64,000 bases of DNA, taken from contig CP075492.1 in NCBI GenBank assembly GCA_021613535.1, positions 5,642,001 through 5,706,000 on the forward strand, read 5' to 3'. Source of the stretch: Adineta vaga (lineage: Eukaryota > Animalia > Rotifera). Shown piece by piece: positions 1,379-21,979 of this stretch; positions within the stretch are counted from its first letter, which is position 1; each line of letters starts with the position of its first letter. The position numbers and the translations under genes were made by a program. A model generated the notes under the pieces. It made no database searches and was not told where the DNA came from. It saw only the letters and a program-made list of their open reading frames with translations.

Positions 1379-2313
1379 GACGATTGCTTAATGTAATCGT
1401 CTAACAACCAACAGAAACGTCTTTTTATTTTATGTTACTACCGAAAATATTTAAAGTAGAAAGAAGTGTAAACAATTTTTCTTTTTCGTTGCAAAATCGA
1501 CGCTTTTTTTTCGTTTATGAAATCGAAAGAGTGAAGAAAAAAAATGGAACATACTGTTTGTTTTTGTCATCAAAAACAAAACAAACTGTGAGTTTCAATA
1601 TGATCATGCGTTAAAACTAACAGCAAAGAGAGAGAAAAGCATTAACAGATTTCACTTTATGTATTTACCTTTCAATGATTAACTAATGGAATTCAGTCAT
1701 TTAACAAATGGGCGTTTTTCATTTCGTTGTCCAAAGAGAAAACGTTATTTCACTACAACCCACGTTATTGAATTATCTTGTATTTGAAAAACACATGAGA
1801 ATAAGTTTTAGATAGTTAAAAATAACATTTCGGTCCAATTACCTTTTCGTAAAAAGATAATCAAAAGGAAATTTTTTCAATTTATGAAATAAATATATGA
1901 ATGTTGTTTTTGCAAATATATTTATTTTAACTATTGTAAACGATATGGTCTGTTTGCTTTTCGTCAACTATTCGACTTCAAATATTTTGGCCTTTATATG
2001 GATTTATATGCATAAATACGTGAATTTAATGCGGATATTGAAAGATTTCTTTACTTGCGATAGATATTTTTGACTTTCAAAGTATAAATTTCATGATAAC
2101 AATGTATGACTAATTTCTTCCGTCGATTAGAGAGATAGTTGTCAGCGTTCGCTGTCCTTCACTGATAAAATATAAAAGAAAATCTTTTGTTTTATGAATC
2201 ATTTTTCTTGCATATAATAAGATCAACATTGTCTTTTCATGTTTTACTTTGTGAGTTAGTATATTCATACAGATAGTGACGTCAACAATATCTTTTTTTC
2301 CATAATCATCGAA

Positions 2314-7048: not shown

Positions 7049-13362
<6,314 letters not shown>

Positions 13363-13463: not shown

Positions 13464-13698
13464 GCCCTCATCATGCGAATCGATAGATGTCGCTAGAAAA
13501 TTTTTCCAAATCAATTCGATTTGATTTTTTATTCTGAGAAAAAAAACATAAAAAGTTTTTTTTATTAAATTCTGATCGATATTCAATTTGAAATACAAAC
13601 TTGACTTTTTTTTCCTTCGGGATTGCTTGTTTTGATCATTGTTTACCAGTTCATATACATACATATACTCATTCGAACGGAAGACAAGACATCTCATC

Positions 13699-14031
13699 AT
13701 GGCTCAAACTTCGGATAATGATCAAAGTTCAATGGCTGCAACTATTATTACCAATAATAATAATGGAAATAATATCGAAAGTGATCCTGATTCATTATCA
13801 ACACATTCGCGTACATCTTACGACTTAAATTATAATTCCGAAGAAGAAGAAGAAAAACAACGTTTAATCAATCAAGTGTTAACATTACAGAAAACTCTTG
13901 ATGATCTTTCACATCGTGTTGATAGTGTCAAGGAGGAAAATTTTAAATTACGTTCAGAAAATCAAGTTCTAGGACAATATATTGAAAATTTAATGGCTGC
14001 ATCGAATGTTTTTCAAATGACAAATAAATAA
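13699..14031 (+). CDS. SCOC: Short coiled-coil protein (SCOC/UNC-69)
   Basis: [56 protein letters not shown] is near-canonical SCOC. Confidence 0.95.
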
Positions 14032-14680
14032 ATTGATTTTGTTTTTTTCGTACGATAATTTGATCGATTTTCTAGTCAGCATAAAACGGGAGAAACAATA
14101 TTAATCAACGCTTTTTTTCTGTATTGTGTTTTGTTTTTGTATACATTTTAATCTCGTTTTTATTCGAAATAAATATGGATATTATCGCTAGATGCAAAAT
14201 GATCGTATTATTTATTTTCAACTTTCAAATCATAGATATTTGATTGAGAGAGTTTATGGGAAATATCTTTTTTTTCGTCAATTGTTTGAATAAACAAACG
14301 ATAGTAAATATATATATATTCAGTTTAATCATAAGTAGCAAAACAAAAGTCAAACGCGAAAAACAAGAAAGAAAAAAAAACGTTCTCTATTCATTTTTTT
14401 TTGTCTTTACAGATCATCATTCTCCAACGTGTCAATAGTGGCCTGAGGATAAGAGACAATAAAACTAAAAAACAGAATGAAACAAAAGCAATGATTAGAG
14501 TAATACACGCACACACATATACAATAAATTTTGTCATAATGATATTCAGATACACATAGCCAATTGATACCGGAAGATAAAAATATATATATATATGATG
14601 TGAATCAGTTTCATTTCATGGCAAATCACAGCTAAGACAAGAAAGAAAAACATGGAATGTAAGAAAAAGAAATGAAAGAG

Positions 14681-17600
14681 TTAAGCTAAGGTTGATATCG
14701 TTTGTTGAACAGGTTCATTTGTATGATCAATTGATAAAGAATTACTTTCTAAATCTTCATCTTCTTCATCAAGATCATCTTCATTTTCGCCTTCGTCATC
14801 ATCGTCATCTTCGTCAGTTAATTCACTGGAATCATCTTCATCTGTTGAATTTTGTGGTAAAGTTTCATCACGATTTGCTTGAAGATGATATGATGATGTC
14901 GATGGAATTAATGGCATTGCTGATGTGGAATCAAGGAGAGATAACATTACAGATGGTTGAGATAAATGTTTCTTCATATGTCGATCAAGATTGGTTTGTT
15001 GACCAAAACATTTATCACAATGTGTACAACGAAATGGTCGTTCACGTTTATGAATATTTCGGATATGTCGTTGTAAATTGGATGAAATGGAAAAGCTTCG
15101 ATTACAGAATTTGCAAACATATGGTTGTTCTCGTGAAAAAAAAGAAAGAAAACGAAATACATGATTAGAATTTTCATAGAAATTCGTCTAATAGAAATAA
15201 CTCGAATACGAATAGTTAAGTATACTTATCTGTATGTGTTCTTAGATGTCGAGTCAAATTGGCACTTCGTGGAAATGTTTTCGAACAGTATGAACAGCAG
15301 TATCGATCTCGGTTTCGAATAGACATTGCTGGTGTTGGTAGAAGATCATTTGTAAGAAACTTTTTCTCTATTAATGACATATTCGGTGGACTTGATGATG
15401 ATGATACTGGTGTTAATGGTCTATGTTCATCATATTCTTTAATTTGTTTTTTTGTTAATGATAATAACTGTTGATGTTGATCATCTTCTTCTTCATCGTC
15501 ATCATCTTCGTCATCTTCATCATTCTGTTCTTTTTTAAACTTTTTCTCATGATTATCTCCGAAAACATGTGAAACACGTTGACAATTGATATCAATTCGT
15601 TTATTTCCAATTGAATAATCAATTGGTTGATCAAAAGATAAGTGTCTTGTGCGTTTCAATGTTTTAGATAAATCAATAGGTTCTTCAATTTTCTTCGTTA
15701 GTGGTAGTGGTAGGGGTGGTGGCGGTGGTGGTGTACAAGCAGTTTTAATAAATGGAAGTAATGCAGATAAATCTGAAGTAATCATTCCATTTCGTTCTTT
15801 ACATGAACTTCTACGAAGAAAATGTTCTTTTTTTTCTAACAAAGAAAGTTTATAAAAAAGATAGATTACCGATGTTTATTCAAAGCAACAGGACTTTGAA
15901 ACGTTTGTCGACAATCTTTACATTCAATTTGTGCTTTAGCATTCGCATGCGAACGTTTATGTCGACATAGATTAGAAAATTGAGTATACGATTTAGTACA
16001 AAACTAAAACAAAATAATAACAATAGAATCGATATTTTCCTTTTTCGAATTGCATTTCTTCTTACTTCACATTTCCATGGTTTAACACTTGAATGAATAT
16101 TTCGATGTTGTTTTAAACCCGATGATGTTTGAAAACTTTTGCCACAATCATTACATGTATAAAGACGATTTTCACATTCACTTGCTTCACTTGAGTTGGA
16201 TGTATTTTGATGATTATTTATAGGTTCGTACATTCTAAAATAGATACTCAAATAGATTTCTTCCTTGCCGGAAGTTGTCGTCTTCTAACGACGACATACA
16301 TTCTTTTAAATTAAAGTTTGACTGATTAAATATGAATTAGAGAGAGAGACAGACAGAGCAAAGAGACACACACATATGCACACTGTCTTTTTTTTCCTTC
16401 TCTCCTCTTCAGTGTATTAAAATTCAACAGAATAACATTATTGTTTTCACATCTCTGCTCAAGGCATTCTTTCTCTCGTTATTCAATAATATTAACAACA
16501 AACCAATATTCTAATTAACAGTTTTTTCTTTCCCCCAATAAGAATAACAATATACACCCAATGGCGAATATGAATGAATCTTTTCTTACCTTTGTTCACG
16601 ATTATCTTGTTCATTTTCATCAGGTTCCATTAATAAATGATCATTTATTATTGGTTCTTCTAGTGCTAGAATATTCAAAAGAAGAAAGAAAGAAAAATGA
16701 AAGATAAAGTAGACATCGATCAATGTGAATGTCTTTCTTTACCTTCTTCATCTTGATTTGTACATCTCATTATGATTCGTTTTCTATTTTGTTCGTCCTC
16801 TGCATTTTCATTTGTCAATTGAAAATTATTTGATTTATTAATAATCGTTGGTTGTTCTAAATGGATAAAATTCAATTTCACACATCAGAAACGATATCAT
16901 TATCCATCAATTCGTTCGATCAATACATTTCTGCATGTTTCAAAGAAATAAAAAATGATAATGAGTATATAGATGTGTCTCATCCATTTGGTGCCCTGCT
17001 TGCTACCTGATGACTTACTTGACATGCTTGCCTTGTTCTCATTCAAATGAAAAGACATGAAATTGTCGTTGAATGAATTTTATCTTTTCTCCCTCTCTCT
17101 CTCTCTCTCTCTCTCACTCCTTTTTCTTCTCATTCTCTTTCTCTTACTTGAATATGACTTAAAAAGAGACATGCCAATATATTTCTTTCGTTCTCCTTCA
17201 GACAAATGATTCCACCTGAGCGAATTCGTTGTTGAATCTTTCATTCTTTTCTTTCTTTTCGTTCGAGCTAGCTCGAAGGGTAATTATATCTTTTTCTCTC
17301 TTTACTCAATTTTCAGACGATGATTATCCATGCTGTGAGCTTGTCACCTCATTCATAAGAGAGAGAGAATCTAGATAGATATCGTAAATATGACACTGCT
17401 GTCTTTCTCTCTCTCTCTCTTCTACTCCTTTTTTTTATGATCGTGTGTAATCCTCAACTGAATCAACATACATAGAATGAAGATAATATTCAGACAACAA
17501 ACGCGAGGTAAAGTGAAAGGAAGAGATAAGTTTTCGATGTGCACATCTCGAATTTTTTTTTGTTAAATGCACACACCTACACAGGTCAATATTTGTCCAT

Positions 17601-18064
17601 TTTTTTTCTCTTCATAATCATCATCATCATCATCAGTCGCCGCATCCTAGACAGATAATAGGCTCTATTAACTGAAGTATGTATGTGAGATAAAACTGAC
17701 TGACAAAGAATCATATTACATGTTTCATGTTCAAGATAATATTCGTCTTTTATACCTTAATTCGATGTCTTATGATATTTCGAAACGATCATAGATGTAT
17801 TGTCTTGAAAATTTGAAAGAAGAAGAAAAAAAATCAAACGAATTGAATGTATGTTTGTTCATCGTGATTTTTATCATCAATAACAACAATGAGAGGATTA
17901 GGATGATATGTATTTAAATAATTATCAAACAAGATTTGTTCCTGTCAATTAACACATCTCAACTTACCATGTTGAACGGAAGAGGATGGTGATGATGTTG
18001 TCGGTGGTGGTGGTGGTGATGATGATGTTAGAAGACGTTTGGCTGCTTTCGTTTTTAGCCGCAT
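14681..18064 (-). CDS. MECOM: EVI1/MECOM/PRDM16-like (hamlet/EGL-43) C2H2 zinc-finger transcription factor, 7 exons
   Basis: N-terminal fingers [24 protein letters not shown] and [13 protein letters not shown]. CtBP-type motifs PIDLS/PIDYS. C-terminal fingers [43 protein letters not shown]...[15 protein letters not shown], then an acidic tail. Upstream exons (18064-17968, 16856-16743, ~16665-16590) splice in phase. Confidence 0.9.
15133..15229 (-). other. Non-canonical AT-AC intron (97 nt) with U2-type signals
   Basis: The minus strand reads ...CAT ACA G|ATAAGT...TTCTAATC...TTTTTTTCAC|GA GAA CAA CCA TAT. Removing it restores the HTGEQPY linker, and no nearby GT-AG pair restores the frame. 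Confidence 0.8.
17093..17115. repeat. (CT)n microsatellite in intron 1 of the EVI1-like gene
   Basis: Direct reading: ctctctct ctctctctct ctctc. Confidence 0.85.
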
Positions 18065-19936
18065 TGATGTCTTTTACTTCTGCTATTCTGTGTGTGTGTG
18101 TGTGTGTATGTATGTATGCTGTGCAAATGTACGTTCGTGTGTGTGTATGAATGTATGTATGTATGTTTCGTTTAAGTTGTCATCATATAAGGTAGTGATG
18201 TTGATGGCATTTTCTCTTCTCTTCTTCTGTTTACAGGTTGCTGCTGATCAATTTTGTTTTAAACTACCACTGCCATCTCCGTTCTCTCTCTTTATGTTCT
18301 GTTCTTCTTCGCTGGTGATGCGAAAACGAAAATCCCCATCGCGTCGTCGTGACCGAGGATGACTGTATGCTCTCTCTCTCTCTTTTTCGCTCTCTTTCTC
18401 GTTCCCAAGTATACCTGCCCGGCGTGCATTTATGTATGTGTGCACACGAATTTGAATGAATAGAAAAGAAGAAGGTAGTTCGTTTGCGTTACTCTCGCAC
18501 ATACACATTGATGATGGAAGCACTTGACAAACTTCTTTACTCAATTTTCTTCTTCTTCTTCTTCTTCTTCGTCTTCGTCATCGTCTTCTTTCGCATGCTG
18601 TGTTCGCTCGAATGCATCAGATGTATTTATATTCAAAGGAAACAAAATAGAGTTTGATTTAAATTTCATGTTTATACAATGTGTTTTTTTCTTCATTCGT
18701 TCTTTAAGAAGAAGAAAATTGTTGTTTTGCAGATAGTACATTTTGAAAGGATAAAAAGAAAAAAGTCAATACAAGTGTTGTGACAAGAGGAGGAGAAGAA
18801 AAAGAAGAAGAAAGAAAGAAAGAAGAAATTTAGATGAAATGGAAATGAAATATCAATTCGCTTGATTACTTTTACGCTCCGTCTGGAAGATGAATAAGAT
18901 GCTTTCGGGCATGTATACGATGAAATCAAAATAATAAGCACATAAAAAAAAAGTTTGAATAAAAGAAAGAAAAGTTTCAAGTTGTTCCGCTAGAGAAAAG
19001 AAACAAGATAATGCAAATTTAGTCAAAATTTATTTTGTTCTTTTTGACGTCAGAGACAATGGTTGAATTTTTATTGAATAAGAGATAATACTTCAGATGA
19101 TTTATGATATTAGTTTGATAATATATATTCAAAGATAAATATACATATAATATTGGAAAAAAGAAATCTCATCAAGTATTCATTGAACAATGCAAATAGT
19201 TTAGAATCAAAAAAGATTGATTGACTACCTATTTAATCAATAATGATTCGAATAATTTACTAATCGTCATTATATATATATATATATATATGTGTGTGTA
19301 TTTGGAGTTCTACGAAAAAACTTTTATGAGTAGGGTTGTGAAGAGAAAATTTACTTTCTTATGCATCGAAAAAATAACTATTAGAACAATTATCAACGTA
19401 TGTAAATCTCAAGTATTAAACAGATCAAACACTTCATGAAAAACGATATGCATCCAACGATAATAAAAGAAAGGGAGGAAGAAACGACACAGAAAGAGAG
19501 AGAGAGAGAAGTAAATAATATTCATTCGGAGTTATTTTAAGACGTTTTCATGGAATGGTCGAAATAATACATTATGATAATGTCAACCATCAAAACATAT
19601 TTTTTTTTATCATGAATAAGAAATTGTTTGGAATATAGATTTTCTCCTTTCATCGCAAAAGAAATATTTTTAATGTTTCGATGGCATATATTCATGATTG
19701 ATAGTTAACGCAAAGCCCTTTTCCTTCATTTCTACCTTTTCAATTCTACTATATACATACACACATTCGATATCATCGTTATTCATACAAAGTACAAAAA
19801 AAGAAAGGAAAATGTAAAATACACTCGAAAGCTGTATCGTCACTCCATATTATTACTTACTTACTCAGTTTTAATCGTAGAAAAAGAAAATATACATATA
19901 AATACATGCGAAAATCTTTTTTGACTAAAATAAATA

Positions 19937-21979
19937 ATGATTAAACCTTCTCTGTTGCGTTCATCAACATTGAACGAGGATGAAATAAAACGAATTATGT
20001 CTGTAATTGAACGTGATTTTAAACTACGACAGAAAGAATCAAAACGTATTGAGTAAGTTTTATACTATTCTTTATATTAGGAATCTTTATTTTGCTTTTC
20101 TTTTTTAGAGAATTGAAGAGAATTATTCGACAAGAATATCAACGTGTCGAACATTTGACTACTTCAAAAGATTTCAATTATCAACGATGTATTCGATGTT
20201 GGAAACTATTTCGACGTTTTTTCAATCCAAAAGAACTTTGTTCCAGGTGTCAATTAAATGTTTGTCATAATTGTGCAACATATAATAAACAAACGAAACT
20301 ATGGACATGTAAAATATGTTTAAAAATCAAGTAAACCTTTTAGTTCATAGAATCTAGTCTCAGTTCTCCTTTTGTTTTTTTAGAGAATTGGAATGTTTAA
20401 CAGGTGAATGGTTTTATCTTTTGGTTGGTAAGAAATTTAAACGATGTGGTAGTGCAAAGATTGTTCGTCAATTATACAAACGAAATAAACAACTTGGTAA
20501 ATGGAAATTTCTTGAAATGATTCGAGTAATGAATCCTTTTCTTTTAGCTAATATAGATGAAATGGATGAAGATTTAGGATATGGAACGTTACCAACAAGT
20601 AATAGTAATGATTCGAGTTAGTAAAAATCTTCTTCAAGAATATAATTCAATGATATTATTTAGGTTCTATTGTATCTTATGTTGTTCATGATAGAAATAT
20701 TAGAAATGAACTAAATGATTATTTCAAACGATTGATTCTATTAATCGATAATTTAAAATTAGAATTATCTAATTCAAATCCATCCAATACATCACTTTCT
20801 CTACGTAGTAAAAGTATGATTCCGAAAAAAAGTTTTCTTTCAATTGATTTAGTAGTTTTCATCAATATTTAATAGATACAGAAAGTATTAAAACTCATCA
20901 ACAACAAATAATATCCGAAATAAATCGTGCTCGATTTGCTCTTAATGATGCGATTCGACGTAAGTTTTATCTCAAATGAATTACAAATCTTACAACAAAA
21001 CTACTAAACGACATATTTTATAGATAAGAAAGATTTTGTTTTGTGATAATAATACGAAAAAGAAAGCTTTCGTGTCCAATATTGAAAGTCTTTTTACACC
21101 TATCTGTTTGATTTCACGTCTTTCTGTAATGCCATTTAAGTTGATTTAGTGTATGTCGAGACTACTTATTCAATTGTGATATGAGAGGAAGAAAATAATA
21201 GTTTATGAGTGATTCATAACCAGATCGAATTTTTAAGTTAACAATTGTCAGAAAATATTTAGATTCCAATACAGAACTTAATCAAACCTATGAAAATGAT
21301 TTACGCAGTTTATTGATACAAAAAACTGAACAAGTTCTTCAAACATGTTTTTCACAAACTCAAAAGGTAATATAGTTTTAATATTAAACTTCTTACGAAT
21401 TGCAATAGAAAAATTTAGAATTCATTGGTACAATCAACAAATTTTGATCAAAATTTAGCACAACTTATATTTGAGAATAAGATTGGTAATGCATCTGAAA
21501 CTACCGATTCGGTATGATTCATCGCTTTCTAATTATTATATCTTCTCATGTTTTATTCATTTGAAAAATAGTCACCATCATCTTCTCAAAGATCTTCGAA
21601 TCTTCAATCATCATTGACTGATATATCATGTGATATAAAGTCTAGTGATCATCCAATTCGAAAAGTAACTTTCTCTGAAACATCAATTATAGATGAAGAA
21701 GGTTAGATTTGTTCTTTCGAATGAAAATATTCATTAAAAAAACATTGGGTTTATATATTTCTAGATGATGATGATGATGACTTAACCCCAACTGAAAGTT
21801 CCGTTCGCGATGATAAATCTGATTCTCTTACTAGTAAACATCGTTTTATTGATACAGATCCAGAAACAATCAAACAATCAACTCAACGTGTTGATAATTG
21901 GCAAACGATATTTCCACCGATGGAAATTGAAAGTGTCCCATCCGATGATGAACAAGTAGAATTCTCTACTTGGTTATAA
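19937..21979 (+). CDS. MYRIP: Rab effector with Slp-homology (Rab-binding, FYVE-type zinc finger) domain, MYRIP/melanophilin-like
   Basis: LNEDEIKRIMSVIERDFKLRQKE..RIEEL; CxxC...CxxC..CxxC...CxxC zinc finger; TGEWFY...KFKRCGSAKIVRQLYKR. Stop at 21977-21979 is followed by AATAAA at ~22017. Confidence 0.75.

Follow-up and report, generated by a model that had tools for sequence, protein, structure and literature searches.

An AT-AC intron with major-type splicing signals, conserved among bdelloid rotifers, in the EVI1-like gene of Adineta vaga

Results

The window analyzed here, a 64,000-nucleotide (nt) stretch of the Adineta vaga genome (contig C3, positions 5642001-5706000, in an assembly of 100.8 Mb, six contigs and ~30% G+C), carries on its minus strand a gene for a zinc-finger transcription factor of the EVI1/MECOM/hamlet/EGL-43 type, and the last intron of this gene, at 15133..15229, begins with AT and ends with AC. 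The AT-AC junction is genuine and is the form that assembles from transcripts. Protein searches, performed exon by exon, placed the closest relatives of the window proteins in Adineta and Rotaria and recovered the C-terminal triple finger and acidic tail of these factors, with fingers 65-89% identical to proteins named EVI1 or MECOM by their sources. The same exon-by-exon search found, in the upstream part, three fingers (including GLKQH.. and ..ALNKH), i.e., part of the seven-finger cluster, along with a PIDLS motif. The penultimate exon (15230..15810, minus strand; defined by translation and RNA joints) encodes this CtBP-type PIDLS motif, an acidic run, C-terminal finger 1 and the first base of a Gly codon. 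The coding part of the last exon (14681..15132, minus strand; defined by translation) supplies the remaining GA of that codon, EQPY, fingers 2 and 3 and the acidic tail, with a stop codon at 14683-14681 and a 3' untranslated region that continues to ~14301. We detected no PR/SET domain in the RNA-supported exons up to 16857; the DNA further upstream was not searched for one.

Read on the minus strand, the upstream exon ends at 15230 with ...CGA CAT CTA AGA ACA CAT ACA G, the 97-nt intron extends from 15229 to 15133 (ATAAGTATAC...TTCTAATC...TTTTCTTTCTTTTTTTTCAC; its borders are CAG/ATAAGT...TTCAC/GA, with slashes marking the splice junctions), and the downstream exon begins at 15132 with GA GAA CAA CCA TAT. 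Joining 15230 to 15132 produces H-T-G-E-Q-P-Y, the linker of EVI1 type that connects C-terminal finger 1 to finger 2, such that the intron lies in phase 1 within the Gly codon of HTG/EQPY. Two other ways of splicing were considered and rejected: a GT (15225) to AG (15130) splice shifts the reading frame, and an AT-AG splice skips 100 nt and loses one codon, whereas the transcripts skip 97 nt. A preliminary description of this DNA had argued that only AT-AC splicing restores HTGEQPY and had reached the same frameshift and the same one-codon loss for the alternatives; all of this arithmetic stands, and transcript contigs carry exactly the joint 15132>15230.

The evidence for this joint comes from contigs of four public runs placed on window positions 14100-19999 (5,900 letters). 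Three of these runs (X1, X5 and X6, from three studies, with X6 labelled as another organism) are RNA-like, in that exons are covered and many intron and intergenic bins are empty; the fourth (X15, an independent run from 2013) is DNA-like, with all bins covered. Contigs of X1, X5 and X6 each contain the joint 15132>15230, which skips exactly 97 nt (AT..AC on the gene strand, GT..AT on the plus strand), has a positional ambiguity of zero ('both' = 0) and is supported by 101-139 matching nt on each flank. The joined form was not found in the DNA-like run X15, and a search of the genome returned no intronless copy of the gene. The last exon is represented in the RNA contigs by 14301/14321-15023 and 14994-15132, and the interior of the intron is covered by no RNA contig of the three studies, with the proviso that contigs could miss a rare retained form.

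The preliminary description had proposed inspecting reads at both intron ends as well as transcripts across the junction. The X15 contigs over the intron resolve into two haplotypes that differ by 4 single-nucleotide polymorphisms (SNPs) inside the intron and by 0 at the four terminal bases, and AT and AC are present on both. Because the terminal bases are free of SNPs on both haplotypes, neither a sequencing error nor a damaged allele accounts for them. More generally, the idea that the AT-AC ends are an artefact (i.e., that they reflect faulty assembly or sequencing, allele damage or a misplaced junction) has practically no probability left, given that AT and AC recur in the independent DNA run, on two haplotypes, in the ohnolog and in at least six other species, and that the junction can be placed in only one way.

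The same contigs skip four other introns, all on the minus strand and all GT-AG (CT..AC on the plus strand), in agreement with the earlier reading of the remaining introns: 59 nt at 15811..15869 (joint 15810>15870), 62 nt at 16004..16065 (16003>16066), 355 nt at 16235..16589 (16234>16590) and 77 nt at 16666..16742 (16665>16743). Apparent 2.1-kb 'joints' between 15502-15513 and 17612-17617 also turned up, in the DNA run as well as in the RNA runs, where one of the two flanks matched over only ~20 letters; we rejected these as splicing and consider them low-complexity artefacts that link acidic GAT/GAA-repeat coding runs.

Apart from its terminal bases, the intron has the signals of a major-type intron. 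The 5' splice site CAG/ATAAGT (15224..15232, minus strand) matches the U1-pairing consensus CAG/GTAAGT at 8 of 9 positions, the mismatch being the A at +1, and it pairs with the U1 5' end AUACUUACCUG at all positions except this one. A TTCTAAT box (15164..15170, minus strand), whose CTAAT fits YTRAY, is a putative U2-type branch site that would put the branch A ~32 nt from the 3' end. Five of seven lineages have such a box at a distance of 22-33 nt from the 3' end, among them the ohnolog (L002), Rotaria (L010), A. steineri (L011) and an environmental contig (L034). An unbroken 18-nt polypyrimidine tract (15135..15152, minus strand) is followed by the terminal AC (15134-15133), and the pyrimidine share at -23..-4 is 0.95, the gene's four GT-AG introns having shares of 0.45-0.80; in the AT-AC orthologs the share before the 3' end is 0.85-0.95.

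Signals of the minor (U12-dependent) spliceosome are missing. The U12-type donor ATATCCTT ([AG]TATCCTT) was not found in the window intron or in any readable ortholog: the donor is CAG/ATAAGTAT in the window, the ohnolog, A. steineri, L012 and L034 and CAG/ATATGT in L017-L023, and TATCCT occurs in 0 of the 7 readable donors. The U12 branch box TCCTTAAC was likewise not found 10-20 nt from the 3' end of the window intron or its orthologs; the best matches to it reach 5/8 and are misplaced, with the exception of a 7/8 match in L012 that abuts the 3' end. The donor, the TTCTAAT box, the 18-nt pyrimidine run and the lack of TCCTTAAC all agree with the preliminary description, which had called the signals U2-like rather than U12-like.

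That description had also suggested a search for the minor small nuclear RNAs (snRNAs), and all four are encoded in the genome with scores over the Rfam gathering cut-offs (U12, 78 bits; U6atac, 83; U11, 81.7; U4atac, 92.8). Their recognition stretches are canonical (AAAAAGGGC in U11, AUGAGUAAGGAAAAU in U12 and AAAGGAGAGA in U6atac), so the minor spliceosome of this species would be expected to look for ATATCCTT and TCCTTAAC, both of which are absent from the intron. Six U1 genes are present, three of which (L031 on C2, L032 on C6 and L033 on C5) have the variant 5' end AUACUUACUUU in place of AUACUUACCUG; the bases changed are those opposite exon positions -1 and -3. Since all six genes keep the C that faces +1, the idea of a U1 variant adapted to an A at this position can be rejected.

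Comparison with the ohnolog, and with the DNA of relatives found by searching with the last-exon peptide, revealed a phase-1 intron with AT-AC ends in the same Gly codon of the ohnolog, of Adineta steineri, of Rotaria and of four environmental bdelloid contig types. The ohnolog on C6 (L002) has a 365-nt intron with the same exon ends (ATAAGTATTC...AAAAATTCTAATC...TTTTTAC), and that of A. steineri (L011) is 264 nt long (ATAAGT...TTCTAATC...TTTAC); in Rotaria sp. (L010) the 3' end was read (...TTCTAATG...TTTTTAC/GAGAAC). Among the environmental sequences, the intron is 52 nt in a GC-richer species (L012; ATAAGT...CTTTAC), 55 or 57 nt in a widespread species (L017-L023; ATATGT...TCTAC) and 92 nt in a further contig (L034; ATAAGT...ATTCTAAT...TTTTTAC). 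Lengths thus range from 52 to 365 nt, and the interior is unconserved except for the splice signals. Ten further proteins of the open-reading-frame style contain [L/S]REQPY, which corresponds to ...AC/GA GAA in the DNA, and P0004, from another bdelloid, reads RTHTGEQPY, the natural spliced product. A metagenome scan yielded one further ortholog and one unrelated zinc-finger gene.

In a tree of last-exon peptides, all these sequences fall in one rotifer clade (support 100/98), within which the window gene, A. steineri and Rotaria form a subclade (99/100) and sequences of the ohnolog type form a grade. L012 and L017-23 are divergent lineages; the neighbouring SCOC protein of L018 is identical to that of the window over 85 residues, which indicates that L018 is probably a bdelloid. 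Because the same AT-AC intron is found in the ohnolog, A. steineri and Rotaria, the AT-AC state is older than the split of the two ohnologs and also older than the separation of Adineta from Rotaria, and no lineage has reverted. The ortholog comparison that the preliminary description had recommended therefore shows AT-AC ends kept across the bdelloid orthologs examined.

Two more EVI1-like paralogs lie on C6 (L003, minus strand ~1700-1770, at 10.14 Mb; L005, at 11.60 Mb). In one of them, a phase-0 GT-AG intron follows GEQ, 8 nt downstream of where the AT-AC intron sits; the other has a linker without an intron and has introns inside fingers 2 and 3. Two genes adjoin the EVI1-like gene in the window, one of the SCOC/DUF2205 coiled-coil type (13639-14031, plus strand) and one that is tektin-like (13156-13362, minus strand). 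Their order next to the EVI1-like gene is kept in environmental contigs L018-L022, and a SCOC gene also follows the EVI1-like gene in A. steineri (L011).

Similar introns were encountered in two other genes, where they are read from genomic sequence. In an M1 aminopeptidase on the same chromosome (L036 744-797, corresponding to C3 ~8974543-8974596), a 54-nt phase-1 intron (...WLNE G/ATAAGTATTC...TTCTAATG...TTTTTAC/GT FATW) interrupts the zinc-ligand motif WLNEGFA within its Gly codon, and only AT-AC splicing would restore this motif; the neighbouring intron is GT-AG. By its letters, the aminopeptidase intron shares the architecture of the EVI1 intron. The C1 copy of prospero (L024, minus strand 1824..1660) has an intron just upstream of the homeo-prospero domain (CAG/ATAAGTATTC...TTATGTAC/ATGGCT) that is in frame if read as AT-AC. 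Its C4 ohnolog (L025 1325-1496) keeps ATAAGT, but here the frame holds only with a shifted splice, ATAA/GT...AAG/CG, and a shift from AT-AC to GT-AG between the two ohnologs is possible. We take the prospero site to be one at which flies and vertebrates have a U12 intron.

The preliminary description had warned that gene predictors would mis-model such a gene, and public models bear the marks of this. The annotated A. steineri protein P0005 reads ...RTHTDNFSISS by way of a false GT-AG intron, which costs finger 9 its two Cys residues, and in Rotaria the model P0003 has its start within the intron. A case of apparent in-frame retention in one species (P0044, from L017 534-663) was rejected: the contig has a stop, and the JGI gene call reads its TGA as sense. 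P0044 is a false protein of 215 amino acids for which an alternative code was apparently used.

Discussion

We conclude, with a probability of about 0.8, that the last intron of this EVI1-like gene is spliced constitutively and belongs to the U2-type ('type II') AT-AC introns. It is filed there because its signals are those by which Sheth et al. (2006, PMC1557818) define this class, which is an accepted one; its members number 15 in human, 6 in mouse and 3 in fly, with 0 in worm and 0 in Arabidopsis, and account for ~0.003-0.008% of introns in human, mouse and fly (PMC1557818). The intron described here is therefore a new and well-documented member of an already known rare class, and the sequence signals imply that its removal would be performed by the major spliceosome.

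The first and last bases of an intron contact each other in the second catalytic step, where an A...C pair can replace G...G. In the mechanism that we envisage, U1 and U6 would recognise CAG/xTAAGT, U2 would use the TTCTAAT box ~30 nt upstream of the 3' end as its branch box, and U2AF would bind the long pyrimidine tract. The A...C pair would then take the place of the G...G contact between the first and last intron bases, and the major spliceosome would thus still accept the doubly changed intron. The great strength of the remaining signals would probably make up for the mismatch to U1 at +1.

Several considerations weigh against this assignment. It rests on signals, and the branch point is putative; the minor snRNAs are present in the genome; 'hybrid' introns with mixed spliceosome dependence have been described (PMC11347168); and the ortholog L012 ends in TCCTTTAC, which matches the U12 branch box at 7/8, though at the very 3' end, a position that is unusable for a branch site. 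It could be argued, then, that the intron is removed by the minor spliceosome despite its divergent signals, or by both spliceosomes. The AT-AC ends, which are typical of one subclass of minor introns, are consistent with this, as are the four minor snRNAs above Rfam gathering scores and the position of the intron in phase 1, which is common among minor introns. Even so, we regard such a route as very unlikely: the donor ATAAGTATAC is unable to pair with the canonical U11 and U6atac of this genome, TATCCT is missing from all seven readable donors, the sole branch-like box that is conserved agrees with the U12 box at no more than 5/8 and is placed 22-33 nt from the 3' end, and the long pyrimidine tract and exonic CAG are hallmarks of the major type.

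A different question is whether the intron serves as a regulated switch, in which slow AT-AC splicing would set how much full-length factor is made relative to a shorter form that ends after C-terminal finger 1. If the intron is left in, translation proceeds as ...RTHTDKYT and stops after 4 codons, as the preliminary description had stated, and since this is the last intron, a retained transcript would have no exon junction past the stop and might escape decay. The stop recurs 4-9 codons into the intron in all orthologs, but early stops are expected by chance at 70% A+T, so its presence is uninformative. Moreover, the spliced form alone occurs in RNA contigs of the three studies, with zero coverage of the intron interior, and among orthologs a length of 52-365 nt and an interior unconserved besides the splice signals are not what a retention switch would lead one to expect. 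We therefore consider regulated retention improbable, and constitutive splicing by the major spliceosome remains the reading that we favor.

The closest known parallels are the U2-type AT-AC introns of SCN4A and SCN5A (PMC1557818), which likewise have AT-AC ends, a U2 donor except at +1, a pyrimidine tract and no U12 motifs, and whose borders are conserved from human to pufferfish, as those of the present intron are across bdelloids and an ancient duplication. They differ in belonging to another gene and phylum, in that their dependence on the major spliceosome is experimental whereas ours is read from signals, and in that the same architecture seems recurrent in several genes of the A. vaga genome. 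With U12-type AT-AC introns, the EVI1 intron shares the terminal dinucleotides, phase 1 and a genome that encodes U11, U12, U4atac and U6atac; unlike them, it lacks both a ATATCCTT donor and a TCCTTAAC box at 10-20 nt from the 3' end, whereas an exonic CAG and a strong pyrimidine tract are present. The GC-AG introns of U2 type (PMC1557818) resemble it in that an odd terminal base is tolerated and offset by an otherwise near-perfect donor; there, however, +2 alone differs, whereas here both of the bases that make contact in step 2 differ together. The change of minor introns into major ones in the leech Helobdella (Larue and Roy 2023, PMC10639083) is also accompanied by heavy loss of minor introns and offers a possible route to the present state; yet conversion is usually inferred to end in GT-AG, whereas here AT-AC persists, and an ancestral minor intron is undocumented at this site.

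How the intron came to have these ends can be accounted for in two ways. It might be an ordinary GT-AG intron that the rotifer stem lineage gained or already had, and in which a change of G1>A became fixed together with a compensating G>C change of its last base. All of the non-terminal signals are perfect for the U2 type, no minor intron is known from this site, and suppression by double mutants of the first and last bases is on record (referred to in PMC1557818). A literature search on MECOM as a minor-intron gene returned nothing useful. Such a path requires an intermediate with a single mutation that is poorly spliced, and several such introns in one genome would more easily stem from a shared source, e.g., converted minor introns. 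On balance we give this origin slightly less than an even chance. Another possible origin, which we hold to be appreciably more doubtful, is an AT-AC intron once of U12 type that kept its ends while its internal signals became U2-like, during the massive loss of minor introns in bdelloids. In its favor, bdelloids are reported to have undergone an extreme but incomplete loss, in which nearly all minor introns disappeared (PMC10639083); the architecture of CAG or G before ATAAGTAT...TTCTAAT...TAC is also present in the aminopeptidase and in the C1 copy of prospero; and the ATATGT donor of one lineage shares ATAT with the minor donor. Yet the outgroups examined have no intron at this exact position: the linker region is uninterrupted in Pinctada, Helobdella and one Tachypleus gene, and the GT-AG intron of Tetraodon is 16 nt downstream. 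Nor does the GT-AG intron of the paralog, 8 nt away, fit a converted minor intron, and no U12-type ortholog was found among the sequences examined.

The recurrence of this architecture in other genes of the genome leads to a broader, speculative and rather unlikely proposal, namely, that bdelloids carry a whole class of AT-AC introns with uniform and very strong U2-type signals (G/ATAAGTAT...TTCTAAT...Y-run...TAC), of which the EVI1 intron would be one member. These introns would constitute a fossil record of lost minor introns, captured by the major spliceosome with their ends unchanged. If true, the class would be a direct and countable trace of minor-to-major conversion, and bdelloids would offer a natural setting for studying a major spliceosome that deals with A...C termini as a matter of routine. 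Should several further introns of this kind in the genome prove sound, they would be relevant to how minor introns vanish.

For the gene itself, the AT-AC intron explains why public annotations of this rotifer transcription factor are broken, with finger 9 deleted or the gene truncated, and annotation of bdelloid genomes should allow for AT-AC junctions. Because this transcript-verified intron has outlasted an ancient duplication of the genome and is shared by different bdelloid families, an A...C terminal pair can be evolutionarily stable in an intron of the major type.

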